The notes beneath the pieces are model-generated. The model was not told the origin of the DNA. It saw nothing but the letters and a program-made list of their open reading frames with translations, and made no database searches. A stretch of 64,000 nt of DNA from Chrysemys picta bellii (taxonomy: Eukaryota). The position numbers and the translations under genes are program-made. The first letter of the stretch is position 1. Every line of letters starts with the position of its first letter. The DNA is taken from assembly GCF_011386835.1 (NCBI RefSeq), contig NC_088803.1, forward strand, positions 17,670,001-17,734,000, in the 5' to 3' direction. Below, in pieces: positions 1-63,817 of the stretch.

Positions 1-1777
1 AGGGATGGCTCGGCAGCCAGGGCCTCCAGCAGGTCCTCTCGGACCTCGTGATGCACCACGTAACGCTGGCGCACTGAGCGAAATGCCGCTTCCCAGCCGC
101 GCGGCTCCTCAGAGCTGGCCACTGTCAGGAAGGTCAGGATTCCCCAGTGGGGACAGGCCTGGAACCCGTAGCCGGCCTCCTCCAGGCGTCCCTTGAACTC
201 TCGCCGCACGACCGGGCTCTCGTCCACATAGCGAAGGAAAAGGGGGTGTTCTGGCCAGCAGAACCCCACGGCCTCTGTGGGGAGACAGGAAAACGGCTGG
301 GACCTGCCGGTGAGTCGGAGAGCCGGGAGGGGCCTGGCCCTGGGGGTTCGGGCACCCGACTGCCGTGGATTGTACAATGGGGGGGGCCAAGCTACATGGA
401 GGGGTTAGATACCTTTGAGTCCTTCTGAGATACCTCAAATGGCGCTGGGGGGCTCAGCAGATGGCGTTCTCCCCCAACAGTCAGTGCTGGCCCCATTGCA
501 ACACTAGGGGGCGCTGTGCGACAGGGAGCAGGACTTCAGCAGGGGGCGCTCTCCCCCTAGCAGTCAGGGCTCTGGTGGCGATGCAGCATTTCAATATGGC
601 TGGCCCTGGTGATTTGGGGAACTGGGGACACGCCCATCCTCCGGGAACCCAAGCAAGAGGTTGGCAGCTGCTGCCTTTGACGGCTCCCAGCCTGAGTCAC
701 ACAGCTGGTGCTGGGGCACGGCACCCACCCAGCTGCCTTCTGCCTCGGGTGGTGGGAGGCCAGGCGGGCTGCGAGTGGCGGGGGGTCCCCAGCAGGAGGC
801 GTCGCTACTGGGCCTGACAGGGGCGAGGCACAAGGAACCATCGGATTGGCGCTCCAGGACCAGCCCAGGAGGGCAGGCTCTGACCTCCGGCCCAGAGAAT
901 GCTCCCGGGCGGTGGGGAAACTGAGGCAGGGCCATGCATATTACTGTGAGTCTGGCTGTAAGTCAAGAGCACTGGAGCTGGGGGCCTATCAACTGTCACA
1001 GACCCCTGACCGTAACCCCCAGTGCCCCATGGCTGGAGAGACTCAGGGGGGTCGGCACTGCTCCTGGTGGTCCCATTTCTGAGAAGCACTGGGGAGCGGG
1101 GCCTGTGCCGGAGAGGACAAGGGGAGAGACGCTGCTGCAACCCGCTGAGCACAGAGGCCCCAAACCTAGCCACTATGGTGGGTCCAGCAGAGGGCGCCAG
1201 AGGCCGTGGAACGCAAGTAACGGCAAGGGGTCACCGGTATGACACTCAGCGCACCCGGGAGAGTCACGGGCTCTTACCAGCCGGAGTGCTAGGATCTTCA
1301 GCCACCTGCCAGGGAGGGCAAGAAAGGAGTCAGTTTATTTATGAGACACGCCCCTCCCAGAGCCGGGGATAGAACCCAGGAGTCCTGACTCCCAGCCTGC
1401 CCCCACCCCCGAGCTCTAACCATTAGACCCCAATTCCCCCCCTCCAAGGCCAGGGATGGAACCCAGGAGTCCTGCCCTGCAGCCTCCCACCCCTCCCCCA
1501 GGTGACCTGCCCCATTTACCGGGCAAGGAGCCGGCAGCCCCAGCGGGCAGACGATTTCCACCAGTTTCATCCAGGTGTTGGGCTGGTGCTCCAGGAAGCA
1601 GCTGATTTCCTCCAGCATGGCCAGCAGGGTCTGACCGGCCCCCAGCAGCGGGAAGGACACGGACTCCAGGAACGCGCCGTACACAGAACATAGGCAGCTT
1701 CGCACCATCTGGCGCATGACCTGCAGGGACCGAGAACAACGGGGGAATAGATTATGGAAATATGTAGGAAGATTCTC

Positions 1778-1826
<49 letters not shown>

Positions 1827-4737
1827 AGAGAAGTAAGCCGATATTCCTTCAGCGAGGCCTCCAGTTCTGGAAGTGGGAACTCGAGGAGAGAAGAGACAGA
1901 CGGGTGATGTCTGTCCGTTACGCGGCACCTAGCTGGCGACAGAGGCTACGAAACACAAGGTATTTAGGATTCGCTGCTATCTTAGCTTCAAGGATGACCT
2001 AACACCTTTTTTCCCTCGGCTTCATTAACCCGTGAGAACTCCCAGGCTTTTCTCTCCTGGAAGTCTCTATGGATGCCAGGGAAACAGGGAGCCCACAGGC
2101 AAGTTCTTTTGGTTTTCAAGACATATTTTTGCTTTTCAGAAACTGCCCATAGCAACGGCTTCAGTAAAAAGTTTCATTTTTGGCGGGGAAAAATTAGTTT
2201 TCAGAAACTGCTTCCAGCAAACCGGCTGCTTTTCAGTGACACCTCTGGGGGCTCAGCACAAATGTTCAGTTTACAAAACCTGCTGATGTTAAAACAAAAT
2301 GGTAAAACAATGGCTATTAACCAGGATGTTCAGGGATGGTGTCCCTAGCCTCTGTTTGTCAGGGGCTGGGAATGGGCGACAGGGGATGGATCACTTGATG
2401 ATTTCCTGTTCTGTTCATTCCCTCTGGGGCACCTGGCATTGGCCACTGTCGGAAGACAAGCTACTGGGCTAGATGGATCTTTGGTCTGACCCAGTATGGC
2501 CGTTCTTGTGTTCTTACATTCAGGTTTTCGTCAAAATTTTCAGTTTGGGGGGGGGGGGGGGGGATCCGTTTTGGGGAAAGAAAGACTTTCCGATTTTCCT
2601 AGGACTTAGAGAAAAGGAGGGTGGTGAAGCACTGGAATGGGTTACCTAGGGAAGTGGTGGAATCTCCATCCTTAGAGGTTTTTAAGGCCCGGCTTTACAA
2701 AGCCCTGGCTGGGATGATTTAGTTGGGGTTGTTCCTGCTTTGAGCAGGGGGCTGGACTAGATGACCTCCTGAGGTCCCTTCCAACCCTGATATTCTATGA
2801 TTCTATGAAAAGATTCTGAATTTCCCTAACAAACCAGATATGGTGGAGGGAAAATGTTTGCCACAACTTTACGGTTTATGGGCTTTTCTATGAAAAACTG
2901 AAATACATCAATTTCTCCAGGATGCTGTTTGGTTTGGAACAACGCTGGGTGGAGAACTGCCGACCCGCTCTAGAGAGTGATATTGCTGTACCAAGTGGTT
3001 TAGGAGCCTAAAGACAGAGTGGCGCCTCATTGGCCCTTAGACTTGCTAAGGCCTGTCTAGGCACCTAAACCCCTTGCTACGTCCTGTCCCAGGCATCTAG
3101 TAGAGCTGGGTAGCAGAGGGAGGGGGGGATCCAGGGGCTACAGCAGAGATAGGTGGCGTATGGGGTGGCCCCCCTTTACCTCTGGCGCCCCCTGCTGCTG
3201 CAGTGCCTCGCCATCCAGCTGCACAAGGTACAGCACTTTGCAGTGCAGATCCGGTAGGGCCGTGCCTGGCACCGTCAGCACCTTCCCCGGTTGGAGCTCC
3301 CCGCTGTGGCCTGCAGCTGCCAGCGCCCTCTCGGCCAGGGCCTGGACCTCCTGAGAGCACCACTGCAGCCCATCCGTCTCCAGCACCACCGGCAGCACCA
3401 GCACATCCGTCTGTCCCCAACACAGAGCCAAGGAGCGTGAACAGACGCTCGGACCGGCTCCTTGGGGGCTCACCGCTCCCCCCTCTGGGCCTGGGGACAA
3501 AGGCCCCGGGGGCTCCAAACAAGGTGAGCCCTAGAGAGACCGTCTTCCTACAGACTGGGAGAGAAGGTGCTAGGGATAGAACCCAGGAGTCCTGGCTCCC
3601 AGCCCCCTCCCTGCTCTAACCACTAGACACCACTCCCCTCCCAGTACCAGGGATAGAACCCAGGAGTCCTGGCTCCCAGCCCCCTCCCTGCTCTAACCAC
3701 TAAACCCCGCTCCCCTCCCACAGCCAGGAGAGAACCCAGGAGTCCTGGCTCCCAGCCCCCACTCTAACCAAGGCACTGACCTTCTGGCTGGCGAGGGACC
3801 CACTGACCACCTGGGTGCGGACTCTCTCCTGGGCCCGGAGGACATTCCTCAGCAGCTCCTGCCGGTTCTCGCCAAGCGGCCACCGCTTGGCACATGCCCT
3901 ATGCAAGGTGGCTACCAGGGCCCCATCAGCGGCCACCACGGAGATGCTGCTCAGGGGGGCGGCAGGGCAGCCCCGGGCGAAGGTGTCGATGGCCTCAGCC
4001 ACGGCCTCCACCAGCCACATGCTTTCCGAGTCCACACAGACGGCCACAGAGGTGACCTGCATCCGGGCCGCGGCCTCCAGGGTCAGGAGCACCGCCCCGG
4101 CTGCCAGTCCCCCAGCCCCCGGCGGGGAGCAGACTTCCAGGCAGGCGTGAGGAGCCCCTCGCCGGCTCAACGCCCTCCGGGTCACCACGCTGGCCCCGCT
4201 GTCCGGGCCGGACTCACCACCCAGCCTCACCACGGCGCCCGCCCGGATCCCAGCGCCGTCTCCCTCCCCGAGGCATAGGCTGATCCCTGGGCACGGCCGG
4301 AAGAACCAGCCCACCGAGGGCACTGCCCTGCCCACCAGGATCAGCAGCTCACTGATGGCCACTTTGGCAGCCAGCGCTGCCTCCCGGGGGCCAGAGAGGG
4401 CCAGGGTGCCAGCATCCCCCTGGCAGTGCCCGCTGGCCATCACCTGCCAGAGGGAGGGTGCCAGGACCTCCGAAAGCTGCTCCCACAGGTCCATCTCTGG
4501 CAGTGTAATGAACAAGGTCTCTGTGCATTGGGTTCCCGGGGGGGCTCCCTGTGGGCCCCGGTGGGTGGGTCTCAGCTCTGTCCTTGCCACAGGCCCCTCA
4601 GGGCACAGCATGGCCCTCTCCCCTGCCTTGGTATCGCTGGTGGGGGGCTGGAGGCACCGCCCAGCTCTGCCCCCGAGGGTCACCGGCGCACCAAGCTTGC
4701 TTGAGAGTCGTCCCCAGACGGCCAAGACGGGTCCCAT
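1..4737 (-). CDS. PARP14/PARP9-like macro-KH-WWE-ART gene, left copy, 5' part (runs off the window start). Exons 4737-3781, 3410-3180, 1720-~1515, 274-<1
   Basis: Spliced translation gives a KH-like segment ([22 protein letters not shown]) and two degenerate macro domains ([19 protein letters not shown]...[19 protein letters not shown]; [10 protein letters not shown]|TDVLVLPV...LHCKVLYLV|[10 protein letters not shown]...[10 protein letters not shown]...LEEISCF). These lead into the large exon [23 protein letters not shown] sites flank the exons and no stops are visible. The donor of the third exon is uncertain, and an upstream coding exon cannot be excluded. Confidence 0.7.
1778..1826 (+). 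repeat. (TCTA)n microsatellite; paralogue at ~49024-49076
   Basis: Directly visible tetranucleotide run. Confidence 0.97.
2311..2516 (+). mobile_element. 3' end of a CR1-type LINE or CR1-tailed SINE (turtle type); paralogue at ~49561-49765
   Basis: Ends ...gggctagatggatctttggtctgacccagtatggccgttcttgtgttctta, the 3' tail typical of turtle CR1/Pol III SINEs as I recall it. Confidence 0.75.
2618..2807 (+). mobile_element. CR1 LINE 3' fragment; paralogue at ~49862-50051
   Basis: gtgaagcactggaatgggttacctagggaagtggtggaatctccatccttagaggttttt...gaggtcccttccaaccct followed by the (attctatg)2 tail. Confidence 0.88.
3561..3770 (-). repeat. Tandem array of a ~70-bp tRNA/SINE-head-like unit
   Basis: Three copies of gggatagaacccaggagtcctggctcccagcccc...ctctaaccacta, the reverse complement of tagtggttagag...gggagccaggactcctgggttctatccc. 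Confidence 0.8.
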
Positions 4738-7700
4738 CGTGGCCTGGAGTGCCCAGCAGGTCGACAGCGCAGCCCGCAACAGCGCAGAGGGGCCAGGAAT
4801 GGCTCACGGCCCACGGCCCACGCCTGGTCTTGGAGCTCTGCTAGAGACAGCGCCGGGTGGTGGTTAGAGTGGGCACCAGCAGACTGCACTCCTGGGTTCT
4901 ATCCCTGGCTCTGGGAGGAGAGTGGGGTCCAGTGGTTAGAGTGGGGGGCGGGGGCTGGGCGCACGAGGAGAGATGTCCCCTCCACAGGGTGCTGGCCAGC
5001 CAGTGCCGCCCCTGCCCTGGGCCCAAAATGGGTGGCTGGTGCCAACCCCAGTGCTGTGTCTTGCCCTTGGCTGTGCCAGCAGCCCCGACAGATGATCCAC
5101 TCCTCCATGGTCACCAATCCCCCTCCATCCTGGGCGCTCCCACCTACCTGCTGCACCAGCCTCTGCCCTCACAGCCCCCTCTGCGGGCTCACACTCCTCC
5201 GACACCTCCTTGGCCCAGGCCCAGCTGGGCAGAGGAGCTCCCAGGGCAGATTGAAACCTCCCTGGGCGCCCGGCTGGGAAGTGAAGGTTCCCCTGCCCAG
5301 GTTTCACTTTCCATTCCTCCCCAGTGCCGGTGAGTTTCATGCTCGTGGGTGGGGCAGAGAGGCTTTGGCCCCAGGAGAAGCCACATAGCTGAGGTGGAAC
5401 TGGAGAGGCCAGGGGCTCTGGGAAGCCAATTGGAGGGATTGCCCGCTGGGCTGGGCACATCCAGAGCAAACCTGGGCAATGGGCCCAAGGGTGTAGCTGA
5501 AATCTGTCTGCAGAGCGACTCACAAACGCCAGCCAGATCTCCTTGTGCTCGGGACTGAACGCTGATCTCCGCCACCTCTTCCCCCCAACCCAGGATCAAT
5601 CTGGAGTCACTCCCAATAGCAGTGGGGACAGGGCTGGATTCTGCTCCCAGAACCCTGGGGTCAATCCGGTGTCACGGCCTACCTGCAATGGGGTCACTCC
5701 ATTGGAGTCAATGGGGCCAGGTGCCCAGGTGGTGGACTGTGGCCAGTGCAGCATTGCAGCCAGCAGGGTGATGCTGGTTTGCACCAGCAGCTGGCCAGCC
5801 GCGTGTACTGGGGGCATTTGGGGGGGGTTGCCCTGGGGGTGGGGGACAGAGAAGGAAGCTGGGGCAGCCAGATGGGGGGAAGTCAGCTGGGCAGTTGCAG
5901 GTGGATGGATGTGCCAGAGCTGGACCGGATTTATTGCCCCCAACCTGGGGGCGGGGGTGAAGTGGGGGTCATCCTATCTCTTTGCAGTGTTGTATGCGGC
6001 TGTTCCGCATCCCAGCGCCGGACAAGCTATCCCTGTGCAGTGTTATATGTGGCTGTTCCCCAGGTGCCCCACCCCAGAGCTGGCTGCATCTCAGAGGCAG
6101 GTGCCCCATCCTCTCTCCTGGGCTACATTCGCCATACCCACCGCCCTCCACACCCAGCAGGCAGGACCCAAGGAGGGGGCTATCAGCCAGGCTCAGAGGG
6201 AGAATTTGGGGCCATTGGTGTCACTGGGATCTGGGGCAGCCCTCTAGCATTGCCCCCTCCGGGTATCATGTGTGGACCCACAGCAGCTGGACCCCAATAC
6301 CTTAGAGGCCATCAGCCAGCGCCAGAGATTCATGTGGTATTACTCTAATGCAGGAGAGGAGACCCCATAGGTGTTAGGGGGAAATCAGTCCGTGTGACCT
6401 GCGGAACTCACTGTTTCTTGTGTCTGGGACTGTGGAGGGGCAGGCTGCAGACCGTGTGTGGAAAGGGGCTACGCTGAGCAGGAATCACAGCCCACCAACC
6501 CACCCTGAGTCCCCCGCGCTGTCCCCTTACCTGGGCTTCCTGCGTGCGGGTGGTTCACCCCATGCTGAAATGCAGCTAGCTCTGGGTTGGGGCAGCTGGG
6601 GAACAGCCGCACATAACACTGCACAGGGGTGGCTCACCTGGCACTGAGATGCAGCTAGCTCTGGGTTGGGGCAGCTGGGGAACAGCTGCACATAACACCA
6701 CATGGAGATTCCCCAGGTCAGGAATTGGAAGAGATGGTCTGGCTGGGTTCTGCCCGCTAATTCAACTCCCGCTCCCGGCCACATGGGGCATTTCATTTGC
6801 TTCCCGAAAGCTCTTTGAGCCCCGTCTGAACTGCCCGCTGGGTGCAGCTTACATCTCCCTGGAATAAATCTTCGCCAAGAGCCCCGGGCAGATCTCCGCC
6901 CAGGGGCAGGTTTCAACTTGCAACCTCCATGCCATGGTGGCCCCTGGGAAAAGCTTGGGAATGTAAGAGAAGCTGGTTTGGGGGGCCTGCAGCTCAGGCA
7001 CCGCCAGGACAAATGGCCTCAATTGGGCTCATGCACCAGATCCAGTGTCCTGAGGAGATGCACCAAGGCAATGGGGATTCGAAAGCTGCTCTGAAGTGGA
7101 GCTGGCACCTACCCCAGCCCCATAGGCAGCGATCTGGCTGGGTAGCCAGTGACCCCTCCCTCCAGGGACCCCCACAGCTCAACCCACAGGGAGGCAGATT
7201 GGGGCTCAGTCTGGCTGCCCCGGTCCCCGGGCTCAGCACACCTCAGGCCCAGCGCCGCCTTGGGTCCTGGATTCGGCCTGGGGCACAGCTCTGGTCTCAG
7301 GGAAGCTGGTTTAGCAGGAGGCGCCAGTCCCCTGCACCCATGGCTCGCCCAGCGCCAATCCCTATGTGGGGGAGGGAATTAGGTGGCTCAGTGACCTGGG
7401 GATGCCCTGAACGGCTGGTACTCTCACTGCCCCCAGGTATGGGCACCCTCTCGGCCCTGCTCCTACGTAACCCATGTCCCAGACTCCTCTGCACCTCACC
7501 CTCAAAATCCACTCTAGGCTTTCGGATCCAATGGAAGTTGAGGCTGGGCACCAAGACTCCTGGGTTCTATCTCAGCTCTGGGAGGGGAGTGGGGTCTAAT
7601 GGTTAGAACACGGGGGTTGCTGGGAGTCAGGACTCCTGGGTTCTATCCCGGATCTGGGAGGGGAGTGGTGTCTAGTGGTTAGAGCAGGGGGCTGGGCACC

Positions 7701-8929
7701 AGGAGTCCTGGGTTCTATACTGGCTCAGGGAGGGGTGTGAGGTGTAGTGGTTAGAGTGGGGGGCTGGGAGTGTTGTCCTCTCCCTTCCAGCCCCTGTGCT
7801 GTTACTAAATCCCACCCCCAACCTCCAATGTGAAGAGGGGTGTCCTGGAAAGACATGCCCTAACCCTAATAGGGAAGTGGCCAAGAACTATCACTCCCAG
7901 CATCCCTGCTGCTGGGGGGCTACTCCTCCCAGTATGCCCTGGGTGGGCTAGGCTGGCCATTAACCCTTTGTTCATCGCAGCCCAGAGGGGTATGGTTTGG
8001 ACAATAGGAAGAACTGTGAGTAGTGACTGTCCTGCGCTGCCGTCATCTCCCTGCACACACACCCAGCTCTCCGTAATCTGGAGAGTAAACCTACACGGAG
8101 TTCAGGCCGCCTGGCAGCAGGTCATCCTTTTGCAGAACGCTGAAGCACATCAAATGAAACCTGGCCACAGCAGGAAACACACCGTTAAGGATGCCTGCAT
8201 CACTTTAACTCTGCCCTCATTCCGTGACTCCCCATGCACACAGGTAGTGCAGTGCTCCTCCGCCAACCCCGCGGTGGCTGAGATGCACAAAGCTCTTCCC
8301 CTCCTTTCCCAGCCCCTTCGTACCCCCAGGAGTCCTGGAACATGGTGAAGGGACCAAAAGCTTGCCCGCCCCACCTTCTTCTGGCCCCCTGGAGTGGGCC
8401 GTCACAATGGGGGTTATGTGGCTGCAGTCCAGGCGGTGGGCAGCCCCATGCTAGCGGGTTAGCGGGTGGCAGCAGTTGTTGGTGAGATGAGGATGGTAAA
8501 TTACCCGAAAACCCAGCCGAGCATGGGGACTTCAGGGCCCTTCGACAGGCAGGCTGAGAGGAAAGGGCACTGGGGGGGGGGGCAGAGAGGGGTGAAGGGG
8601 CCCCCTGGATCCCAGCACACACATGTGGGAGGCAGGGAGAGGGGCTTTGTCCCACCTAGGGGCTGGGCCCCTCAGATCTAGGCGCACGCACAAGAGCGGG
8701 GAGCATGTGGGGCTGACAGTTGCCCCTGCTCCTGTTCTCTCCAGTGTCCCACCCCCCAACCTCTCTCCCCTCCCCTGCCACCCATCCCCATTTATTCCCT
8801 TCCCCTTAGCCCCCTCTCCTCGCTGCAGCCCCAAATTTCTCTCCTACTGTTTCCCACCCCCTGCCCCCAATGCCCCTCCCTTCCCAGGAACCACTCACAG
8901 GGTGATTTTTCCCCCAATACTTTGGGGAG

Positions 8930-9500
8930 TGCAGGCGGGGTGTGTGTGTTGGGGTGCAGTGGCAGAGCTGGGGATACAGGGGTGGGGGGTGCATGAGGAG
9001 AGCTGGGGTGCACTTGCAGGGCTGGGATACAGAGTGGCTGGGCATGCAGGGGCAGAGCTGTGAAGTAGGTTGGCGTGTAGCCAGGGGAAGATTTGTGGGT
9101 ACAGGGTCTGGGGGTGCACAGAGAGTTAGGGCTGAAGAGGGGCTGGTGTCCTGGCAGGACTGGGATACAGAGGGGCTGGGGGTGCAGGAGCAGATCTGGG
9201 GTACAAGGTGTGGGGGTACCTGGGGAGAGCTGGGGTGCACTAGCAGGGCTGCGATACTGAGGGGCTGGTGTGCAGGGACAGAGCTGGGGGTACGGGGGTG
9301 CAGGGGATTGGGGTGCACGGGGAGCTGGGGATACAGGGTCTGAGGGTGCATGGGGAGAGCTGGGGGTGCACTGGCAGGGCTGTGATACAGAGGGGCTGGG
9401 GGCGAAGGGGCAGAGCTGGGGTGCATAGGGAGAACTGGGGTACAGAGATGGGGGATGCAGGATATCGGGGTGCACGGGGAGAGCTGGGGGGCAGTGGCAG
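8930..9500 (+). repeat. Degenerate G-rich minisatellite upstream of the ZNF promoter
   Basis: Recurrent ggggtgca(c/t)gggga/gagctggg/gatacagaggg motifs. These explain the long ORFs on both strands here. Confidence 0.7.
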
Positions 9501-9559
9501 GGCTGGCGGTGCAGGGCCATACACCCTCCCCCTCTCCCTGCGCAGGAGCGGGGAGGCCC

Positions 9560-9670
9560 CGCGGGGCATGCTGGGAGCTGCAGTCCCGCGCGGGGCATGC
9601 CGGGAGCGGTAGTCCGGCCCGGGAACACTGGATCCGAGCGGGATCCCGGCGGAGCGCGGCGCCCCCTGCG
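9560..9670. promoter_or_regulatory. CpG-rich promoter with two tandem ZNF143/Staf (SBS) motifs and a probable non-coding first exon of the ZNF gene (donor after 9670)
   Basis: cgcggggcatgctgggagctgcagtc (9560-9585) and cgcggggcatgccgggagcggtagtc (9589-9614) are the reverse complement of ACTACnnnTCCCAGCATGCCCCGCG. Donor is cg|gtaaga. Confidence 0.7.
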
Positions 9671-10073
9671 GTAAGAGCTGGGCCGGGCCAGAGTTGGGGC
9701 GGGGGCGGCTTCGGCTGCTGGGCTCGAAACCCAGGAGTCCGGCCCCCTCCCCCCCAGCCACTAGACCCCCCTCTCCTCCCCACCCTTCCCCGGGCGCAGA
9801 ACCTAGGAGGCTCCCAGGCCCCCAACGCCCCCCCCCCAAGATACTAGTCCCCATTCCCCTCCCAGCGCTTGGCTCGGAAGACAGGAGTCCGGGTCCCCCC
9901 CCTGACACCCCCCCTTCCCTTCGCTTTCCTCCAGGAGCTGGGATAGAACCCAGGAGTCCGGGCTGCCAACTGTCCCACTTAACCCACCCCACCCCGAGTG
10001 GCAACAGGCAGCCTGGGGCGCTGTCCATCTCCCTGGTGTTTCTCCTCCCGCAGGTGCCGGGACGTGGAGCAGG

Positions 10074-11462
10074 ATGGCCCAGGGGACCCCTCCTGTGATG
10101 TTGACCCCGGCTGGGCTGGCGGCCCTAGGATGCCTGCAGCAGGGTGGAGCCAGTGCCCCCCAGCAGGAAGGGGATGGCGACAGCGGGCACCGGGCTAGTG
10201 GAGATGTGGGGCCGGATGTGTGGTGGGAAGAGGTGCAGGGAGACACGGGGATGCTCTCAGATCTAGGTGGCCGAAGGAAGGGGGACCATGGGGGCCAGGC
10301 CATGGGGGCGGGGGAGCAGACAAGAGCCGGGGGACCGGCTGCCCTGGTGCGCCCCCGGCGGTACGGGTGCAGCGTGTGCGGCAAGGCCTTCTCGCAAAGC
10401 TCCACGCTGATTGTGCATCGGCGGTCGCACTCGGGCGAGCGCCCCTACACCTGTGAGGAGTGTGGCCGTGCCTTCGCCCAGAGCTCGGGCCTGGCCAAGC
10501 ACCGGCGGGTGCACACAGGTGAGCGCCCCCACCCCTGCCCCGAGTGCGGCCGGCGCTTTGGCAAACGCTCCAACCTGGCAGTGCACCGGCGGGCCCACAC
10601 TGGTGAGCGCCCCTTCCCCTGCCCCGCCTGCCCCAAGGCCTTCGCCCGGCGCGCCGACCTGGCTGTGCATGGCCGCACCCACACCGGGGAGCGACCCTAC
10701 CACTGCGCCGACTGCGGCAAGGGCTTCAGCACTGGCTCCAACCTGGCGCAGCACCGGCGCACGCACCAGCCTGATCGGCCTTACCGCTGCACCCAGTGTG
10801 GGAAGGGCTTTCCCGGCAGCTCGGAACTGCTGCGCCACTGGCGCTCCCACACCGGGGAGCGGCCCTACCACTGCGGCATCTGCGGCCTGGCCTTCGCCCA
10901 CAGCACGGTGCACCGGCGCCACCAGCGGGCCCACCTGGAGGAGTCGCCCTACCGCTGCAGAGACTGCGGGCGCAGCTTCGCCCAGCGTTCTGACATGGTG
11001 GTGCACGGCCGCACCCACACTGGTGAGCGGCCCTACCGCTGCCCCGACTGCCCCAAGGCCTTCGCCCAAAGCTCCCACCTGGCCACCCACCGGCGCAGCC
11101 ACACCGGCGAGCGCCCCTACCGCTGCCCTGACTGCCCCAAGGCCTTTGCCCAGAGCTCAGCCCTCACCGTGCACCGGCGCACCCACACTGGCGAGCAGCC
11201 CTACGCCTGCGGCGAATGTGGCCGACGCTTCCACCGCAGCTCCAATCTTATCCGTCACCAGCGCACCCATACGGCCGAGCGCCCCTTCGCCTGCCCGCAG
11301 TGCGGCCGACGCTTCCACCGCCGCTCCAACATGGTGGTGCACCAGCGCACCCACTCCCGGGACAAGGGGCTCTGCCCGCCGGCTGCCAGGGACGCTGCCC
11401 GCTGGGGGGCCTTGGAGACAGAGAGCCCTAGCCCTGTGCCCACAGCCACGGGGACTATATAG
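10074..11462 (+). CDS. C2H2 zinc-finger protein, 12 tandem fingers, no KRAB or SCAN domain visible, 462 aa
   Basis: Single ORF after the acceptor at 10053. Twelve CxxC...HxxxH fingers with TGE(R/Q)PY linkers. AATAAA at ~11922. Confidence 0.93.
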   Translation: MAQGTPPVMLTPAGLAALGCLQQGGASAPQQEGDGDSGHRASGDVGPDVWWEEVQGDTGMLSDLGGRRKGDHGGQAMGAGEQTRAGGPAALVRPRRYGCSVCGKAFSQSSTLIVHRRSHSGERPYTCEECGRAFAQSSGLAKHRRVHTGERPHPCPECGRRFGKRSNLAVHRRAHTGERPFPCPACPKAFARRADLAVHGRTHTGERPYHCADCGKGFSTGSNLAQHRRTHQPDRPYRCTQCGKGFPGSSELLRHWRSHTGERPYHCGICGLAFAHSTVHRRHQRAHLEESPYRCRDCGRSFAQRSDMVVHGRTHTGERPYRCPDCPKAFAQSSHLATHRRSHTGERPYRCPDCPKAFAQSSALTVHRRTHTGEQPYACGECGRRFHRSSNLIRHQRTHTAERPFACPQCGRRFHRRSNMVVHQRTHSRDKGLCPPAARDAARWGALETESPSPVPTATGTI

Positions 11463-13844: not shown

Positions 13845-13899
13845 CGCCCCCCTTTCACGTCTTCACGCGAAGTGGGGATCTAGGGGGCTCCCGCCCCCC

Positions 13900-14175
13900 C
13901 ATACTCCCAGCATGCACCGCGCCCGCTATGCAAATGACCCTGCTCCGCCCGCCAATGAGTGTCGCCGAGCGGCGAGCCCCGTGTGTGTCTCACATAGTAC
14001 CATGCGCGCCTACCAGCTAGGGGCGGGGCTCCGGCTCCTCCACGCCCGCGACCGGCCAGGGCAGGGGACGGGGCAAATGCAAAGGAGCGATATGCAAATG
14101 AGGATGGGCTGCGCGAGAGTTTGGTTCCCGGAACGTTGCCTGGAGCGTGGGCGGGTGGGAGCCGCCGCTCCCAGG
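13900..14175 (+). promoter_or_regulatory. Probable PARP2 promoter and first exon (donor ccag|gtgcgg near 14174)
   Basis: CpG-rich. Contains SBS motif actcccagcatgcaccgcg (~13903), octamers ATGCAAAT (~13928, ~14091) and GC boxes. Confidence 0.55.
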
Positions 14176-44210: not shown

Positions 44211-44462
44211 AGACTGGCTGGTGCTGGGGGGTGAGGAGTGGGATAAGGGGTCTTTCCCCTCTAGGGGGCTCTGGGTCCCATCTGGCCCCAGGGCAGGGAC
44301 TGCCTGGCTCAGAGGGGTGGGGAATGGGACATGGGGCCTGTCCCGTCTAGGGGGCCCTGGTTCCCATCCGGGCCCAGGGCAGGACTGGGTGGCCCAGGGG
44401 GCGGGGATGGCATACAGTCCTGGTGCCCCAAGCCCCGGGGACCCCCGGGGGCCCAGCCCCAC

Positions 44463-47400
44463 TCTTGCGGCAGGTGTTCCTGAGGCCGATCTCCTGGATG
44501 GAGCGCCAGTTCTCGGGCCGCGTGCCGTGGTAGAGGAGACGCTCGTTGAGCTCGCCCGGCGGGTTCTTTTCCTCCATCCAGCAGCGCTGCCAGCAGTAGG
44601 AGACCCACAGGACCCGGTTCTGGACCTTCTGGATCTGCAGGGGGCAGGGCAGGGACCGTGGGCATGGCCAGGAGCTGCTAAGGGCACCCCCATGTGGGGT
44701 GGGGGGGCACCCAGCCTTTCAGGTTCTTCCCATCCCATCTTGGCCAGAGCTTCAGTCCCAGGTCCCCAATCCCCTGCAGCTCTGTCAGGGGACACCCCCC
44801 AGTGGCCACGGACATCTGGCCTTCCTGCCCCATGGACAGCCCTACAAGGACCTCCTTCTTCCCTGCAGGCAGGGCCAGGGAAGCTCCCCGTCACTGAGCC
44901 CCACCCGCAGCTGGGGCTAGGAGAGATTCCCTCCTCCCCCTGACTGGGCTTTGGGACCCACAGGGGGTGTCTCTCAGCCCCAGCCCCAGAGCCCCCCAGC
45001 CTCTCACACTCACGTGGAGGATGCAGTAGCCCGGGGCCGTCTGCTTGAACCCCTTGGCCACCTCCTGGTACTCCTCTGAGCCCTCCGCCAGCTCCACCAG
45101 CCTCACCAGGCTCTCACCCATGGGCTCCCAGTGTGGGGCAAGGCACCTGTCTGCAACGAGAGATGGGGTCAGTCAGTGGGGAGCCGCCACAGGCCCAGTC
45201 CCTGCCCTAAGGCTGGATGGGAGCTGGCGCCCCTGTGAGAGGAAAGGCCCCGTGCCCCATTCCCTGCCCCCGTCCCAGTCCCCCGAGGTTGGATGGCAGC
45301 TGGCACCCCCTGGAGAGGAAAGGTGCCATTGCCCATTCCCTGCCCCCAAGGCAGTCAGTCCCACACTGGTGCCCTCCTGTCCAGCAGTGGGGCAGCGGTG
45401 GGGGGGTCTTTGGAAGGGGGTCGGTTCCTCTCACCCCACAGGCAAATCTCCCGGCGGAGGCGGATGGGGGCCCCAGTGCCCGGCGCAACACCCACTGCCT
45501 TGAGAAGGTCGATCTCTGCCCGCTGCCCGTCCCACTCGATCTCCGCCCGGCGCTCCCCGCTGGCGTACGCCGTCTCCAGCCACTGGTTGGTGGCCACATT
45601 GAAGGGATGCCAGCCGGCCAGGGCCAGGTGCTGCCACTTGACCAGCCCATACAGCACCTCGGCCTCCACCCGCTGGTGCTGAGCAGCCTGGATCCTGGTG
45701 TGGACAGCAGCCACGGCCTTGGCCACATCCTCCCAGGCGCCCCGCACCCGCAGCACATTGCCCAGTAGGCGCCGGAGGCTGACAGGGAAATGGTACAGCA
45801 AGGCCTGGCCGAGCTCCCGCAGGGCCTGGGCGCCAACGGCCACCAGCTCCGCATTGCAGACGCTTTCATCGTGGAACTGGGCCACGAAGCCAGCCACGGC
45901 TGCCTTCACCCGTCCCATGTCAGGCTCTCGGCCCACCATGCGGAGCTCCAGCCCCTTGGGGGCCCCTGGGAATGCAGAGAGGGGTCCTGAATAGATGGGT
46001 CAGCACCAGTGGGGCTCGGTTAGCAGGGGCAGTGGGTCAGAAGCAAGGGGTACTGGCAGAGCTGGAGGGGGCCCAGGGCTAGGGTAGCAGGGGGCTATGG
46101 ACTGGGAGTGCGGCCCAGCCCTCCAGGTCCTTGCATTGCTCTTACCTGCCTGCACCTTTGGGGGCTTCCTTGGGGCATTGGGAGCCTCCAGAGCTGCACC
46201 CTGCAGAGGAGGACAGAGCTGGGTGAAGAGGGCACAGGGAACACTGCCAACTCCATGCAGCCCATGGCCGTGCTGCTCCCCCGAACCCCCGTGCCCGGCC
46301 TCAGGTGCCCTGTCCTGCCCAGGGGACCCAGACACCTGGCCGGGGGGATGGGCCACTCACCAGGTTCGCAGACCCAGAAACTGAGGCACAAAGAGGGGGA
46401 GGGAGGCAGGAAGTCAGGGGCAAAGCAGAGAATAGAACCCAGGAACCCCCACACACCGCCCCAGCTCCCGCTCTAACCACTAGACCCCACTCCCCTCCCA
46501 GAGCCAGCAGAAAACCCAGGAGTCCTAGCACCCAGCCCCCCTGCTCCACCCACTGGATCCCACTGCCCTCTCAGACCTGAGACGGACCCACTGCCCTCTC
46601 AGCCCAGACCGCCCCTCCCCAGTTCTTGTAGTGCCAGCTCCCATGTCTCTGACTCTGACAAACCCGGCGACCCTGGGCGACCTGCCCGCCCTCAGGCTGC
46701 CACCCACAGCTCTCACCTGCCCACAGGTGCTGGAGGGGCCATTTGTAGGGGGGTCTCCTCGCAGGCTCACCACGCAGCAGAGCTGCTGAGCCAGGTCCTG
46801 CAGGAGGGTCGCCCCCTCCCCACAGAGGTACTCGCCCAAGGCTCGGCCCCTGATGGGCACCGTGCCCAACACCAGGGAGTCCAGGTCAGCCTTGATGGCC
46901 CTTCTGGCCAGCCGCAGGTGACGCAGGAGGCCCCGCAGCCCCAGGGACAGCACCCGAGTGTTGGGGTGCAGCTGAACGGTGACCTGGAGGTGCTCCCAGT
47001 TCATCAAGCGCAGCAGCTTTGCCCCAGCTTCTGCCAGCTCTGGCGGGGGGACGTCCAGCCGCTCCTCGGCTGGTGAGTTATTCTGCAGATACTCCCGGAC
47101 AGCCGCCTCCGCCTCGGCCACGTAGGGCTGGAAGCCCACCACCACCAGCTGCTCCCGGCTCGCGGCACAATGCAGGGCCACGTCCCACTGGGCGCCCAGC
47201 CCAGCCAGCAGCTCGCCCCACTCCTGACCCTGTGTGGCCCAGTGCAACCCCTCCTCGATTGGCACCGTCTGGCAGCCCACCAGGCCACCCAGCAGCTCCG
47301 CCGCATGCTGCACCTTCTCCTGCTCCACCCCAGCCACCGTGACGCCCTCAGAGGGCGCCAGCCCAGCATGGAGGTCCCAGGCCAGCTCAGTCCCTGAGTC

Positions 47401-49023
47401 ATCGGCGGGGAGCTCCGGCTCGGCAAGAAGATCCCAGGCTAGCTCGGTTCCCAAGACAGCAGTGGGGAGCTCTAGGATGGCGGCGATGCCCCGGTCCAGG
47501 AAGAAGCTGGGGGTGAAGACATCCTCTCGGTGCTCCTGGATGAAGCGAACCTGGAGAGGCGAGACGGGCACCGACAGGACCCAGAATGCCCTGAGCAGCT
47601 GCTGGCACCGGCTCTCCACCTCGGCCACCTGCCGGCAGGGCCCCGGAAGATGATGATAGCTGGGGCGCCCTGTCGAAGCTCCATGCTGACGTGGGGTCAA
47701 GGAGCTCCTTCACCACGTCCTTGACGATGACCCACCTGGGCAGAGGCTCGGCCGAGTACTCCCGGCTCACCAGCTGCCTCTGGAAGGCCCTCACAGCCAG
47801 GTGCTGGAGGAATGGTGCCATCTCCCCTGCCAAGCCGACAAAGCCCACCCCTTCATAGACCCGGATGAACCCGAACTCCTCCACCAGGGATGGCTCGGCA
47901 GCCAGGGCCTCCAGCAGGTCCTCTCGGCCCTCGTGATGCACCACGTAACGCTGGCACACTGAGCGAAATGCCGCTTCCCAGCCGCGCGGCTCCTCAGGGC
48001 TGGCCACTGTCAGGAAGGTCAGGATTCCCCAGTGGGGACAGGCCTGGAACCCGTAGCCGGCCTCCTCCAGGCGTCCCTTGAACTCTCGCCGCACGACCGG
48101 GCTCTCGTCCACATAGCGAAGGAAGAGGCCAGCAGAACCCCACGGCCTCTGCGGGGAGAGAGGAGAATGTCTGGGACCCGCCGGTGAGTCGGAGAGCCGG
48201 GAGGGGCCTGGCCCTGGGGGTTCGGGCACCCGACTGCCGTGGATTGTACAATGCGGGGGGGGGGGGGGTCAAGCTACATGGAGGGGTTAGATACCCTTGA
48301 GTCCTTCTGAGATACCTCAAATGGCGCTGGGCGGCTCAGCAGATGGCGTTCTCCCCCAACAGTCAGTGCTGGCCCCATTGCAACACCAGGGGGCGCTGTG
48401 CGACAGGGAGCAGGACTTCAGCAGGGGGCGCTCTCCCCCTAGCAGTCAGGGCTCTGGTGGCGATGCAGCATTTCAATATGGCTGGCCCTGGTGATTTGGG
48501 GAACTGGGGACACGCCCACCCCCCAGGAACCCAAGCAAGAGGTTGGCAGCTGCTGCCTTTGATGGCTCCCAGCCTGAGTCACACAGCTGGTGCTGGGGCA
48601 CGGCACCCACCCAGCTGCCTTCTGCCTGGGGTGGTGGGAGGCCAAGGGGGCTGCGAGTGTGGGGGGTCCCCAGCAGCAGGCGTCGCTGCTGGGCCTGACA
48701 GGGGCGAGGCACAAGGAACCATCGGATTGGCGCTCCAGGATCAGCCCAGGAGGTCAGTGGGGAAACTGAGGCAGGGCCATGCGTATTACTGTCAGTCTGG
48801 CTGTAAGTCAAGAGCACTGGAGTTGGGGCCGCATCAACTGTCACAGACCCCTGACCGTAACCCCCAGTGCCCCATGGCTGGAGAGACTCGGGGGGGTTAT
48901 CACTGCTCATGGGGGTCCCATTTCTGAGAAGCACTGGGGAGCGGGGCCTGTGCCGGAGAGGCCAAGGGGAGAGACGCTGCTGCAACCCACTGAACACAGA
49001 GGCCCCAGGTGCGAGCCCCAAAC

Positions 49024-49077
<54 letters not shown>

Positions 49078-51891
49078 GAGAAGTAAGCCGATATTCCTTC
49101 AGCGAGGCCTCCAGTTCTGGAAGTGGGAACTCGAGGAGAGAAGAGACAGACGGGTGATGTCTGTCCGTTACGCGGCACCTAGCTGGCGACAGAGGCTACG
49201 AAACACAAGGTATTTAGGATTCGCTGCTATCTTAGCTTCAAGGATGACCTAACACCTTTTTTCACTCGGCTTCATTAACCCGTGAGAACTCCCAGGCTTT
49301 TCTCTCCTGGAAGTCTCTATGGATGCCAGGGAAACAGGGAGCACACAGGTAAGTTCGTTTGGTTTTCAAGACATATTTTTGCTTTTCAGAAACTGCCCAT
49401 GGCAACGGCTTCAGTAAAAAGTTTCATTTTTGGCGGGGAAAAATTAGTTTTCAGAAACTGCTTCCAGCAAACCGGCTGCTTTTCAGTGACACCTCTGGAG
49501 GCTCAGCACAAATGTTCAGTTTACAAAACCTGCTGATGTTAAAACAAAATGGTAAAACAATGGCTATTAACCAGGATGTTCAGGGATGGTGTCCCTAGCC
49601 TCTGTTTGTCAGGGGCTGGGAATGGGCGACGGGATGGATCACTGGATGATTACCTGTTCTGTTCATTCCCTCTGGGGCACCTGGCATTGGCCACTGTCGG
49701 AAGACAAGCTACTGGGCTAGATGGACCTTTGGTCTGACCCAGTATGGCCGTTCTTGTGTTCTTACGTTCAGGTTTTGGTCAAAATTTTCAGTTTGGGGGG
49801 GGGGGGAATCCGTTTTGGGGAAAGAAAGACTTTCCGATTTTCCTAGGACTTAGAGAAAAGGAGGGTGGTGAAGCACTGGAATCGGTTACCTAGGGAAGTG
49901 GTGGAATCTCCATCCTTAGAGGTTTTTAAGGCCCGGCTTTACAAAGCCCTGGCTGGGATGATTTAGTTGGGGTTGTTCCTGCTTTGAGCAGGGGGCTGGA
50001 CTAGATGACCTCCTGAGGTCCCTTCCAACCCTGATAGTCTATGATTCTATGAAAAGATTCTGAATTTCCCTAACAAACCAGATATGATGGAGGGAAAATG
50101 TTTGCCACAATTTTATGGTTTATGGGCTTTTCTATGAAAAACTGAAATACATCAATTTCTCCAGGATGCTGTTCGGTTTGGAACAACTCTGGGTGGAGAA
50201 CTGCCGACCCGCTCTAGAGAGTGATATTGCTGTACCAAGTGGTTTAGGAGCCTAAAGACAGAGTGGCGCCTCATTGGCTTAGACTTGCTAAGGCCTGTCT
50301 AGGCACCTAAACCCCTTGCTACGTTCTGTCCCAGGCATCTAGTAGAGCTGGGTAGCAGAGGGAGGGGGGGATCCAGGGGCTACAGCAGAGATCCGTGGAG
50401 TATGAGGTGGCCCCCCCTTTACCTCTGGCGCCCCCTGCTGCTGCAGTGCCTCGCCATCCAGCTGCACAAGGTACAGCACTTTGCAGTGGAGATCCGGTAG
50501 GGCCGTGCCTGGCACCGTCAGCACCTTCCCCGGTTGGAGCTCCCCGCTGTGGCCTGCAGCTGCCAGCGCCCTCTCTGCCAGGGCCTGGACCTCCTGAGAG
50601 CACCACTCCAGCCCATCCGTCTCCAGCACCACCGGCAGCACCAGCACATCCATCTGTCCCCAACACAGAGCCAAGGAGCGTGAATAGACGCTCGGACCGG
50701 CTCCTTGGGGGCTCATCGCTCCCCCCCTCTGGGCCTGGGGGGCTCCAAACAAGTTGAGCCCTAGATAGACCGTCTTCCTACAGAGCAGCTGGGAGAGAAG
50801 GTGCTAAGGATAGAACCCAGGAGTCCTGGCTCCCAGCCCCCTCCCTGCTCTAACCACTAGACCCCACTCCCCTCCCACAGTCGGGAGAGAACCCAGGAGT
50901 CCTGGCTCCCAGCCCCCACTCTAACCAAGGCACTGACCTTCTGGCTGGTGAGGGACCCGCTGACCACCTGGGTGCGGACTCTCTCCTGGGCCCGGAGGAC
51001 ATTCCCCAGCAGCTCCTGCCGGTTCTTGCCAAGCGGCCACCGCTTGGCACATGCCCTATGGAAGGTGGCCACCAGGGCCCCATCAGCGGCCACCACAGAG
51101 ATACTGCTCACGGGGGCGGCAGGGCAGCCCCGGGCGAAGGTGTCGATGGCTTCAGCCATGGCCTCCACCAGCCACATGCTTTCCGAGTTCACACAGACGG
51201 CCACAGAGGTGACCTGCATCTGGGCTGCAGCCTCCAGGGTCAGCAGCACCGCCCCGGCTGCCAGTCCCTCGGCAGGGAGCAGACTTCCAGGCAGGCGTGA
51301 GGAGCCCCTCGCCGGCTCAACGCCCTCCGGGTCACCACGCTGGCCCCGCTGTCCGGGCCGGACTCACCACCCAGCCTCACCACGGCGCCCGCCCGGATCC
51401 CAGCGCCGTCTCCCTCCCCGAGGCATAGGCTGATCCCTGGGCACGGCCGGAAGAACCAGCCCACCGAGGGCACTGCCCTGCCCACCAGGATCAGCAGCTC
51501 ACTGATGGCCACTTTGGCAGCCAGCGCTGCCTCCCGGGGGCCAGAGAGGGCCAGGGTGCCAGCATCCCCCTGGCAGTGCCTGCTGGCCATCACCTGCCAG
51601 AGGGAGGGTGCCAGGACCTCCGAAAGCTGCTCCCACAGGTCCATCTCTGGCAGTGTAATGAACAAGGTCTCTGTGCATCAGGCTCCCGGGGCGGGGGGCT
51701 CCTTGTGGGCCCCGGTGGGTGGGTCTCAGCTCTGTCCTTGCCACAGGCCCCTCAGAGCACAGCTTGGCCCTCTCCCCTGCCTTGGCATCGCTGGTGGGGG
51801 GCAGGAGGCACCGCCCAGCTCTGCCCCCGAGGGCCACCGGCACACCAAGCTTGCTTGAGAGTCATCCCCAGATGGCCAAGACGGGTCCCAT
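44463..51891 (-). pseudogene. PARP14/PARP9-like macro-KH-WWE-ART gene, right copy, disabled. Exons ~51891-50939, ~50652-50419, 48148-46717, 46200-46146, 45965-45435, 45150-45014, 44634-44463
   Basis: KH-like array (GEYLCGEGATLLQDLAQQLCCVVSL), WWE (VKWQHLALAGWHPFNVATNQWLETAY...AEIDL) and ART start (PHWEPM...LAEGSEEYQEVAKGF; IQKVQNRVLW.SY...NERLLYHGT). Lesions: TGA at 51862-51864; indels near 51690 and 51270; loss of the second macro exon; 11-bp deletion near 48125; two 1-bp homopolymer deletions (~47695, ~47640); final catalytic exon not found. Confidence 0.85.
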
Positions 51892-56819: not shown

Positions 56820-56907
56820 ATATATAAGCCTCCCAGACACTCTGGTCTTTACAAGTGACGGTGAGCAGGTGATGCAATTCGCGGCATGTGCCGCGGCGTA
56901 TGCAAAT
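56820..56907 (-). promoter_or_regulatory. Type-3 Pol III (H1/RPPH1-like) promoter, right copy, consensus-like
   Basis: On the minus strand: ATTTGCAT (56907-56900), an SPH-like motif, TCACCGTCACTTGTAAAG (56864-56847), a 19-bp spacer, then TTATATAT (56827-56820). Confidence 0.8.
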
Positions 56908-63813: not shown

Positions 63814-63817
63814 GTGA

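Follow-up and report, generated by a model that had tools for sequence, protein, structure and literature searches.

The window, a stretch of 64,000 nucleotides from Chrysemys picta bellii, contains two copies of one gene, both on the minus strand (Table 1). Copy 1 starts at 4737, runs down to position 1, and continues leftwards beyond the window edge. Copy 2 extends from its start codon at 51891 to the end of its last kept exon at 44463. Very probably, copy 1 belongs to an intact gene that encodes an unnamed clade-3 macro-PARP, of which four exons and the beginning of a fifth lie inside the window, and copy 2 is a duplicated, unprocessed pseudogene of that gene. A first-pass annotation had already reported both copies, and its end points were exact. 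The window does not contain a single N.

Table 1. Positions of the features of both copies within the window
Feature	Position	Strand	Remarks
ISRE-like element GAAAGTGAAAC	5301..5311	-	about 565 bp upstream of the copy 1 start codon
Copy 1 exon 1	3781..4737	-	957 nt from the ATG at 4737; encodes the disordered N-terminus, the small KH-like domain, and the first, degenerate macro domain
Copy 1 exon 2	3180..3410	-	231 nt, first half of macro domain 2; AG/GT borders, phase 0, tblastn with orthologues
Copy 1 exon 3	1520..1720	-	201 nt, second half of macro domain 2; splice sites present
Copy 1 micro-exon	1278..1305	-	28 nt, VAEDPSTPA plus 1 nt; traced via P0044 on the locus
Copy 1 KH-array exon (start only)	1..274	-	1448 nt in full; the rest lies beyond the window edge
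Copy 2 exon 1 remnant	50938..51891	-	stop at codon 10, 4-bp insertion near 51695, 7-bp deletion near 51270
Copy 2 exon 2 remnant	50423..50653	-	98.7% identity with copy 1
Copy 2 deletion site	49007..49028	.	about 615 bp lost (copy 1 positions 1163-1777): exon 3 and micro-exon
Copy 2 KH-array exon	46717..48148	-	11-bp deletion near 48128, in-frame 3-bp deletion, two 1-bp deletions near 47700-47640
Copy 2 linker exon	46146..46200	-	55 nt; encodes some of the disordered loop interrupting KH unit g
Copy 2 KH8-like and WWE exon	45435..45965	-	531 nt in copy 1; Pfam WWE, E 7.2e-6
Copy 2 ART exon 1	45014..45150	-	137 nt in copy 1
Copy 2 ART exon 2	44463..44634	-	bears the H of the triad; last kept exon
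End of close homology between the copies	44212	.	in the last intron, about 190 bp short of the expected final ART exon

The rest of copy 1 was recovered by extending the locus to the left: contig L002, from the same chromosome, is 100% identical to window positions 11717-1 and holds the remaining exons intact (1448, 55, 531, 137, 172, and 293 nt). Across the window and this left-hand sequence, 1351 codons are open and the splice sites are canonical throughout; the joins of exons 1, 2, and 3 are all phase 0. Exon 1, with a GT donor directly past 3781, has an open frame and 86% identity to residues 1-324 of Mauremys LOC123348363. Exon 2 matches macro domain 2 (MD2) of both PARP9 and PARP14 in profile comparisons, and the annotated Chrysemys product P0044 contains the exon 3 sequence at 100% identity. 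In contigs from RNA runs X1 and X2, 28 letters separate the two sides of the joint 1518|272, and the micro-exon accounts for them. For these searches, the queries were single exons or database proteins. The 55-nt linker exon and the 531-nt KH-WWE exon of the first-pass annotation are both present, but it had missed the micro-exon, and just two of the three ART exons lie inside the window. The domain order that it obtained by combining the two copies is borne out, but the composite merged an intact gene with a pseudogene that supplied the KH, WWE, and ART exons.

Copy 2 has accumulated a premature stop, five frameshifting indels (including the 11-bp and both 1-bp deletions in the KH-array exon), and the deletion of two exons, and its last ART exon is absent. 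Because it keeps introns and splice sites alongside these disabling mutations, while its parent is intact, it qualifies as an unprocessed pseudogene. Neither exon 3 nor the 28-nt micro-exon was found in copy 2, and the deletion that removed them is seen as a jump in the offset between the duplicated blocks. These blocks are 94-97% identical. Probably, a segment of at least 20 kb, including a zinc-finger gene and PARP2, was duplicated in tandem to give copy 2; one contig resembled a third copy.

At 44212, the alignment ends for both the copy 1 locus (L002:15386) and Trachemys (L001:11682). No remnant of the final ART exon of copy 2 was found in the 64-kb window by low-stringency tblastn with six C-termini. 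We rejected the idea that the ART domain of copy 2 is cut at 44463 with remnants downstream: the seeming extension to 44242 is a low-complexity artefact. Our first reading of 44212 was as the duplication breakpoint, but this was dropped. Weak colinear homology returns about 3 kb further on (40954-39809), so a later replacement or deletion at 44212 is equally possible.

We considered whether copy 1 might have an open frame yet be unconstrained, with the whole locus heading for loss in emydid turtles. Since the duplication, the lineage-specific dN/dS has been about 0.8 in both copies, although from few changes (14 nonsynonymous to 6 synonymous on the copy 1 branch). In addition, exon 1 of Trachemys has frameshifting indels of 1, 11, and 4 nt in its assembly, and the turtle macro domain 2 has lost 8 residues from a loop. 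However, 1351 stop-free codons at 62% G+C, in a gene that is about 4% diverged from its broken duplicate, would be unlikely without constraint. Relative to the Mauremys gene, which is likewise intact, the dN/dS of copy 1 is 0.46 (dN/dS was calculated exon by exon). Spliced RNA contigs are also present, and the Trachemys assembly, with 5.4 kb of N in the locus, may be poor here. Thus, decay of copy 1 seems unlikely, and we favor an intact gene.

Contigs from RNA-type runs show spliced joins from exon 3 through the micro-exon to exon 4 (the KH-array exon) of copy 1; no exon 1-2 or exon 2-3 joins were seen among the contigs of four RNA runs. The exon 1 region is covered by RNA-run contigs (3833-4775), some RNA-run contigs cover introns, and exon 2 lies within an unspliced contig. 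Logan protein fragments fall within the large exon and are uninformative on splicing. NCBI's annotation divides the gene into models of 434 and 954 amino acids in Chrysemys and into short models in Trachemys. The Chrysemys split and the pattern of junctions might indicate two adjacent genes, one short and made up of macro exons alone (exons 1-2), the other a KH-WWE-ART gene whose start codon would be the Met in exon 3. We consider this very unlikely because single models of 1293-1754 amino acids span both parts in Mauremys, Alligator, squamates, marsupials, and a caecilian, with the junction conserved colinearly. Also, exons 2 and 3 each encode half of macro domain 2, which folds as one domain, and the phase-0 joins of exons 1-3 have canonical sites. 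We therefore treat copy 1 as a single gene.

The protein, about 1351 residues long, starts with a disordered N-terminus and a small KH-like domain; two degenerate macro domains and eight type-I KH folds come next, and a WWE domain and then a complete ART domain with the triad H-Y-I form the C-terminal part. The small N-terminal domain may be KH-like, as suggested by a weak profile match and the order of its secondary-structure elements; the AF2 model of the N-terminus is moderate (pLDDT 65). No macro domain scored above the Pfam threshold (best 14.3 bits, cut-off 22), and none was detected when single exons were compared with the PDB by phmmer or with Pfam. Nevertheless, the profile of the family (the gene and its orthologues) matches PARP14 MD1-MD2 (E 1.8e-7) and PARP9 MD2 (2e-5), and in Foldseek the AF2 model is matched best by the tandem MD1-MD2 of PARP14 (E 1.5e-13, 384 columns). 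Profile and fold thus agree on the two macro domains that had been read from the sequence, and on the arrangement of clade-3 macro-PARPs, with at least one macro domain N-terminal to the ART. In alignments to the macro domains of PARP14 and PARP9, the GTG-type loop past the "SIAFP" strand and the first-strand Asn are replaced in both domains; the further 8-residue deletion in turtles lies in that loop of macro domain 2. Without the conserved ADP-ribose-binding glycine loops, the macro domains are predicted from their sequences to have lost binding and hydrolysis.

The KH-like repeats that had been noted in the large exon (1448 nt in copy 1) are supported by both AF2 and VIA. The array was modeled with a pLDDT of 82 as eight beta-alpha-alpha-beta-beta-alpha units, which match the KH domains of Nova-2, vigilin, and FUBP1 (VIA, Z 8-10). 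The KH8-like unit of the copy 1 model matches Nova-2 KH3 with a VIA Z of 9.8 and an rmsd of 1.8 over 70 residues. The seventh KH (unit g) is interrupted by a disordered linker at the exact point of the macro insertion in PARP14 KH7. We numbered the KH domains using hhalign instead of Pfam (KH_PARP14_2/4/6/8), whose numbering varied between species. The ART domain matches Pfam's PARP family (E 3e-22 on Mauremys P0038) and is nearest by score to human PARP15/14/12. The H, Y, and I of the triad are aligned in every intact member, including the copy 1 product P0044, in keeping with the mono-ART triad H-Y-[I/L] of clade-3 macro-PARPs; copy 2 retains the H alone.

We compared the family with known macro-PARPs, among them the antiviral enzymes PARP14 and PARP9. 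In hhalign, family residues 99-469 align to eel PARP14 708-1188 (KH6/7a, MD1, and MD2), residues 581-923 to 443-783 (KH2/3 to KH7a), and residues 981-1325 to 1463-1817 (KH8-WWE-ART), so the first two blocks are swapped relative to eel PARP14. Measured against both PARP14 and the teleost PARP14-like genes, the block order is permuted, with profile-profile probabilities of 95-100%. Like PARP14 (BAL2/ARTD8), the family has a type-I KH array, macro domains, a KH8 with a long helix, a WWE domain, and a C-terminal mono-ART; KH units c-g are colinear with PARP14 KH3-KH7a (98%), as is KH8-WWE-ART (100%). However, family proteins lack an RRM (no Pfam matches) and have two degenerate macro domains instead of three. 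Their macro block precedes the KH array; in PARP14 it lies inside KH7, a site occupied in the family by about 30 disordered linker residues. Other differences are the triad, H-Y-I in place of H-Y-L, and the neighboring gene, PARP2 in place of PARP9/DTX3L.

PARP9 (BAL1) also begins with a small KH-like piece and two macro domains, and family macro domain 2 resembles the solved MD2 of PARP9 (profile E 2e-5; TM 0.6 normalised to the target). The ART of PARP9 lacks the canonical triad. Between its macro domains and ART, PARP9 has one more KH domain and no WWE, whereas the family has eight KH domains and a WWE, followed by an H-Y-I ART; upstream of the family gene are a zinc-finger gene and PARP2, instead of DTX3L in the head-to-head arrangement of PARP9. 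PARP15, which is confined to mammals, has two macro domains and the best-scoring solved ART (153 bits, 192 residues aligned), but it has no KH or WWE domains, and its macro domains correspond to PARP14 MD2-MD3, whereas the best register for the family's is MD1-MD2. The teleost "PARP14-like" proteins (about 1370 amino acids, such as Hypomesus P0060) are colinear with the family from the KH array through the ART (probability 100%), but the fish proteins keep an N-terminal RRM and have Pfam-detectable macro domains past the KH array, where the family has the linker.

In a tree of ART domains that was built without tetrapod PARP14, PARP9, or PARP15, the family forms a clade with 100/99 support that follows the species tree, and its sister is the teleost PARP14-like clade (96/92), not eel PARP14. 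Against human PARP15/14, the family ART scores 153/122 bits, while a fish PARP14 scores 226/214. It is extremely improbable that the gene is a plain turtle orthologue of PARP14 or PARP9 whose domain order was misread, as might be suggested by one Crotalus and one Chelonia record that submitters named PARP14, by the PARP14-like C-terminal KH8-WWE-ART, or by the PARP9-like N-terminal KH-macro-macro: the profile alignment to PARP14 is non-colinear, there is no RRM, the macro domains number two instead of three and are outside KH7, the WWE and H-Y-I triad are unlike PARP9, the same species have other macro-PARP accessions, fish PARP14 is much nearer to human PARP14/15 than the family is, and the genomic neighborhood is different.

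Thus, the data support a separate paralogue that fits neither the PARP14 nor the PARP9 order. The first-pass annotation had reached this view of the order, and the non-colinear alignment agrees. Its proposal of an undescribed, exon-shuffled paralogue is supported, with qualifications: the clade, the bit scores, and the separate census accessions support a paralogue, while exon shuffling is a suggested mechanism. In published work on PARP evolution, we found no description of the family, nor did keyword searches of the literature find one. Since the proteins are already in NCBI and UniProt as uncharacterized proteins, "undescribed" applies to the searchable literature only. In a published census of macro-PARPs, family accessions are absent for Crocodylus, Gavialis, Trachemys, Crotalus tigris, and Geotrypetes, which all have other macro-PARP accessions there.

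Turtles, crocodilians, squamates, marsupials, and a caecilian have orthologues, which are colinear across more than 25 species and in nearly every case carry the label "uncharacterized LOC." Within tetrapods, inheritance has probably been vertical. Database searches found no orthologue in birds, eutherians, monotremes, or frogs, and the gene appears to have been lost from placental mammals and apparently also from birds. The first-pass annotation had located the gene beside PARP2; in turtle and alligator (Mauremys and Alligator), it is head-to-head with a C2H2 zinc-finger gene, and PARP2 lies beyond. Neither PARP2 nor the zinc-finger gene is within 10 kb in the Rhineura flanks.

Upstream of copy 1 is a putative interferon-stimulated response element. 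GAAAGTGAAAC has two matches in the 64 kb, versus 0.26 expected by chance, and the second is the duplicate upstream of copy 2. In Trachemys, Mauremys, Alligator, and Rhineura, the region upstream of the orthologue carries the block AATGGAAAGTGAAAC unchanged, while its flanks align poorly among turtles, alligator, and Rhineura. The ISRE of an interferon-stimulated gene is thus present in the upstream region and invariant in five species, and the gene is putatively induced by interferon.

The protein would then be an interferon-induced mono-ADP-ribosyltransferase, with activity predicted from its triad. As has been suggested for PARP14, its KH array may be what recruits it to partner proteins or single-stranded nucleic acid, and the two macro domains would have lost the ability to read or erase ADP-ribose. 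The permuted order would best be explained by a PARP14-like ancestor in which a KH-macro segment was duplicated internally, with differential loss afterwards. We give roughly even chances to a broader reading, in which the family is an eighteenth, unnamed lineage of vertebrate PARPs: an interferon-driven macro-PARP that was permuted from a PARP14-like gene in or before the tetrapod ancestor, with an active ART, a nine-KH nucleic-acid-binding scaffold, and pseudo-reader macro domains; it was lost in placentals and apparently birds, and may work with a DTX3L-like paralogue, as PARP9 does with DTX3L.

Macro-PARPs are central to the host-virus conflict over ADP-ribosylation, and the architectures recognized in current accounts are PARP9-, PARP14-, and PARP15-like, three in all. 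A fourth one with a permuted order, conserved between caecilians and marsupials and equipped with a conserved interferon element, would be a natural experiment on a KH-WWE-ART engine whose macro readers were moved and inactivated. It would also identify an immune gene that was lost from placental mammals. Censuses that need a detectable macro domain miss such members. As for annotation, the split Chrysemys models should become one, and the second copy should be marked as a pseudogene.

The window contains a tandem segmental duplication: in a self-comparison, block A (1-21557) and block B (47886-63817) are 94-97% identical, with additional sequence in block A at 1163-1777, 6886-10678, and 13886-14930. 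The stretches 1-4737 and 44463-51891 are two copies of a single minus-strand gene. The first-pass annotation had described a rearranged macro-PARP that might be an undescribed, exon-shuffled paralogue. Its observation is confirmed and its interpretation is supported, with corrections: of the two copies, one is dead, the family has annotations but no name, and its macro domains (MD) are, judging from their sequences, degenerate.

We located the exons of copy 1 by protein tracing: P0044, the annotated Chrysemys product (954 aa), was traced onto the locus that holds copy 1 beyond the window edge (L002, from assembly GCA_011386835.2; 100% identical to window 11717-1), and P0038, the Mauremys orthologue, was traced onto the window. 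Copy 1 has ten coding exons with AG/GT borders throughout, 1351 codons, and zero stops, and its dN/dS relative to Mauremys is 0.46. P0044 begins at a methionine in exon 3 and extends left of the window. The leftward extension proposed earlier supplied the intact 3' exons, including those for the complete ADP-ribosyltransferase domain (ART). The large exon (claimed as 1.43 kb), the 55-nt linker exon, and the KH-WWE exon had been described correctly, but the micro-exon had been overlooked.

Exons of copy 1 and blocks aligned by hhalign between the family and PARP14
Feature	Position	Strand	Basis
Exon 1	4737-3781	-	protein tracing, ATG at 4737
Exon 2	3410-3180	-	protein tracing
Exon 3	1720-1520	-	protein tracing
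Micro-exon, 28 nt	1305-1278	-	protein tracing
Exon 4, 1448 nt	274 leftwards, past window edge	-	protein tracing on L002
Remaining exons (55, 531, 137, 172, 293 nt)	left of window	-	P0044 tracing on L002
PARP14 708-1188 (KH-array end + MD1-MD2)	family 99-469		hhalign, probability 96.9%
PARP14 443-783 (KH2/3 to first part of KH7)	family 581-923		hhalign, probability 98.1%
PARP14 1463-1817 (KH8-WWE-ART)	family 981-1325		hhalign, probability 100%

Public runs, presumed to be RNA, contain about one-third of the words of 1-4800, which is near the exon share. Their contigs cover exon 1 (over 3833-4775), and contigs from two runs pass from exon 3 into exon 4 through the micro-exon, whose 28 letters are all that separates the two. 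This part of the RNA check succeeded, but neither an exon 1-2 nor an exon 2-3 joint was seen in the run contigs. Because of this, we infer the unity of the gene from single models in other species, and from the second macro domain being split over exons 2 and 3, rather than from a turtle RNA joint. Some contigs cover introns. At intronic 2241-2880, 1281-1440, and 3521-3840, contig depth in RNA-type runs is thousands to a hundred thousand, with many loose ends; these are probably highly transcribed interspersed repeats outside the gene's exons. Also, a 449-nt contig from run X1 over 246-693 has 19 differences from copy 1; of 15 listed variants it has only 8 in common with copy 2, and 7 of the copy-2 differences are absent from it. 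Since it fits neither copy, it may come from a further, third copy or from a highly divergent allele.

Only WWE and PARP are above the Pfam threshold. A macro profile built from the first ~480 residues of 11 orthologues and the three turtle exons matched the solved PARP14 MD1-MD2 (E = 1.8e-7, two stretches), PARP9 MD2 (E = 2e-5), and PARP14 MD2; its first domain matched a PARP15 macro domain and macroH2A. We also modeled Mauremys residues 1-480 with AlphaFold2 as a proxy (86-91% identity to the turtle exons; pLDDT 65), and the top Foldseek match was the PARP14 MD1-MD2 tandem (E = 1.5e-13, 384 columns), followed by single macro domains. Given these profile and structural matches, the N-terminal region contains two macro folds, as had been claimed. 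In the alignment, the loops that hold the phosphates of ADP-ribose are unconserved in both domains, and ADP-ribose binding and hydrolysis have presumably been lost. The claimed N-terminal KH-like fold corresponds to a small beta-alpha-beta-beta-alpha domain (residues 70-138) preceding the macro domains, but its assignment as KH is tentative.

Fold prediction supports the claimed exon of KH-like repeats. A model of P0044 60-680, which follows macro domain 2, from a 21-sequence alignment (pLDDT 82) has eight beta-alpha-alpha-beta-beta-alpha units, the type-I KH topology. With VIA-align, units d to h matched type-I KH domains (Nova-2 KH3, vigilin, FUBP1, IMP1, FMRP; Z 8-10); units a to c are putative KH domains by topology alone. 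Unit g is split by a ~30-residue disordered stretch encoded around the 55-nt exon. The ART of copy 1 is complete, with H, Y, and I present.

In an AF2-based annotation, PARP14 comprises RRMs, KH1-6, KH7 split by three macro domains, KH8, WWE, and ART, while PARP9 has a split KH enclosing two macro domains, one further KH, and ART, without WWE (PMC10450202). The family fits neither order, as first proposed: it has a WWE domain, unlike PARP9, and hhalign against four fish PARP14 sequences gave three strong blocks that are mutually non-colinear (see table). Teleost PARP14-like proteins (~1370 aa) are colinear with the family from the array to the ART (probability 100%), but where the family has a linker they carry inserted macro domains, which align with the N-terminal module of the family. 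The former KH7 macro insertion site survives as the linker. If a KH-macro segment was duplicated internally and complementary parts were then lost, the permuted order would result; we infer this origin, the exon-shuffling mechanism, and the gene's function.

Only 16 proteins came up when the KH-WWE exon was searched exhaustively with HMMER, with full-length relatives among the top ten. The relatives are annotated as "uncharacterized protein LOC..." and come from turtles, crocodilians, squamates, a marsupial, and a caecilian; by tblastn, the turtle exons are colinear with the full-length ones. Word searches gave further orthologues from Mauremys (P0038, an intact protein of 1332 aa), Alligator, five additional marsupials, and numerous lizards and snakes. 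The squamate proteins (P0008, P0039, P0045-P0050, P0052, P0058) are ~1720-1750 aa because the KH array contains an internal duplication of ~400 residues: in each protein, the turtle array aligns to two successive stretches. In Trachemys scripta, exon 1 (L001 ~1901-2860) differs from Chrysemys copy 1 by deletions of 1 and 11 nt and insertions of 1 and 4 nt, N runs are long at this locus (5.4 kb in total), and the NCBI model is two short proteins. This may reflect either a broken gene or a poor assembly of the locus.

In an ART tree (without tetrapod PARP14, PARP9, or PARP15, and ignoring row P0016, which has no ART), 18 family members form one clade (support 100/99), within which the branching order matches the species tree. 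Its sister group is the teleost PARP14-like clade (96/92), and eel PARP14, PARP10, and PARP12 fall apart from it. The family ART scores 153 bits to human PARP15, 122 to PARP12/14, and 81 to PARP10, whereas the ART of eel PARP14 reaches 226 bits to human PARP15 and 214 to PARP14. The macro-PARP census of Delgado-Rodriguez et al. (PMC10221186) includes Crocodylus porosus, Gavialis, Trachemys, Crotalus tigris, and Geotrypetes, but under other accessions; the family's were not found in it. That census took only proteins with a detectable macro domain, but the family's macro domains go undetected at standard thresholds. The clade, the bit scores, and the census accessions of other macro-PARPs support a separate macro-PARP paralogue. 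As for "undescribed," no description turned up in keyword searches or in the papers on PARP evolution that were consulted, but the family is already in databases, unnamed.

Comparison with copy 1 shows copy 2 to be a pseudogene: codon 10 is a stop, 4 bp are inserted near 51695, and 7 bp are deleted near 51270. A ~615-bp deletion has taken out exon 3 together with the micro-exon, and exon 4 has an 11-bp deletion near 48128 (20 nt into the exon) and two 1-bp deletions near 47700-47640. Polarised substitutions after the duplication are about twice as numerous in copy 2 (43) as in copy 1 (20). The last ART exon is missing, and no remnant was found across the whole window. At 44212, within the last intron, the close homology with copy 1 and Trachemys breaks off, exactly at a minisatellite of ~90-nt period (window 44212-44407; L002 15188-15458). 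Because weak colinear homology between the copies resumes at 40954-39809, the loss of this exon may have occurred either at the breakpoint of the duplication or through later replacement.

The claimed location beside PARP2 was borne out, with a C2H2 zinc-finger gene in between: upstream of the macro-PARP, on the opposite strand, lie the zinc-finger gene (10074-11462, +) and then PARP2, and the order is the same in Mauremys and Alligator. Neither neighbor was found within 10 kb of the Rhineura orthologue. The zinc-finger gene is a single exon encoding 462 aa, with eleven matched zinc-finger stretches (an 84-bp repeat family) and 86% identity to the Alligator protein. Its block B copy (54024-55061) is partial: the 5' part is gone because block B lacks an equivalent of 6886-10678.

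The ISRE core GAAANNGAAAS occurs twice in the 64 kb (0.26 expected), both times ~565 bp upstream of the respective start codon and on the gene's strand. The block AATGGAAAGTGAAAC is unchanged upstream of the Trachemys, Mauremys, Alligator, and Rhineura orthologues while the flanks have diverged, which supports predicted interferon control of the macro-PARP gene.

The window has ~62% G+C and zero N, with an A+T-rich island at 24-28 kb (44% G+C). Its non-duplicated middle contains a ~1.8-kb satellite with a 40-bp period and strong C-over-G skew (31445-33200), a 36-bp-period repeat array (41896-42655), and a 320-nt inverted repeat (36325-37367; 91% complementary, arms 403 nt apart).
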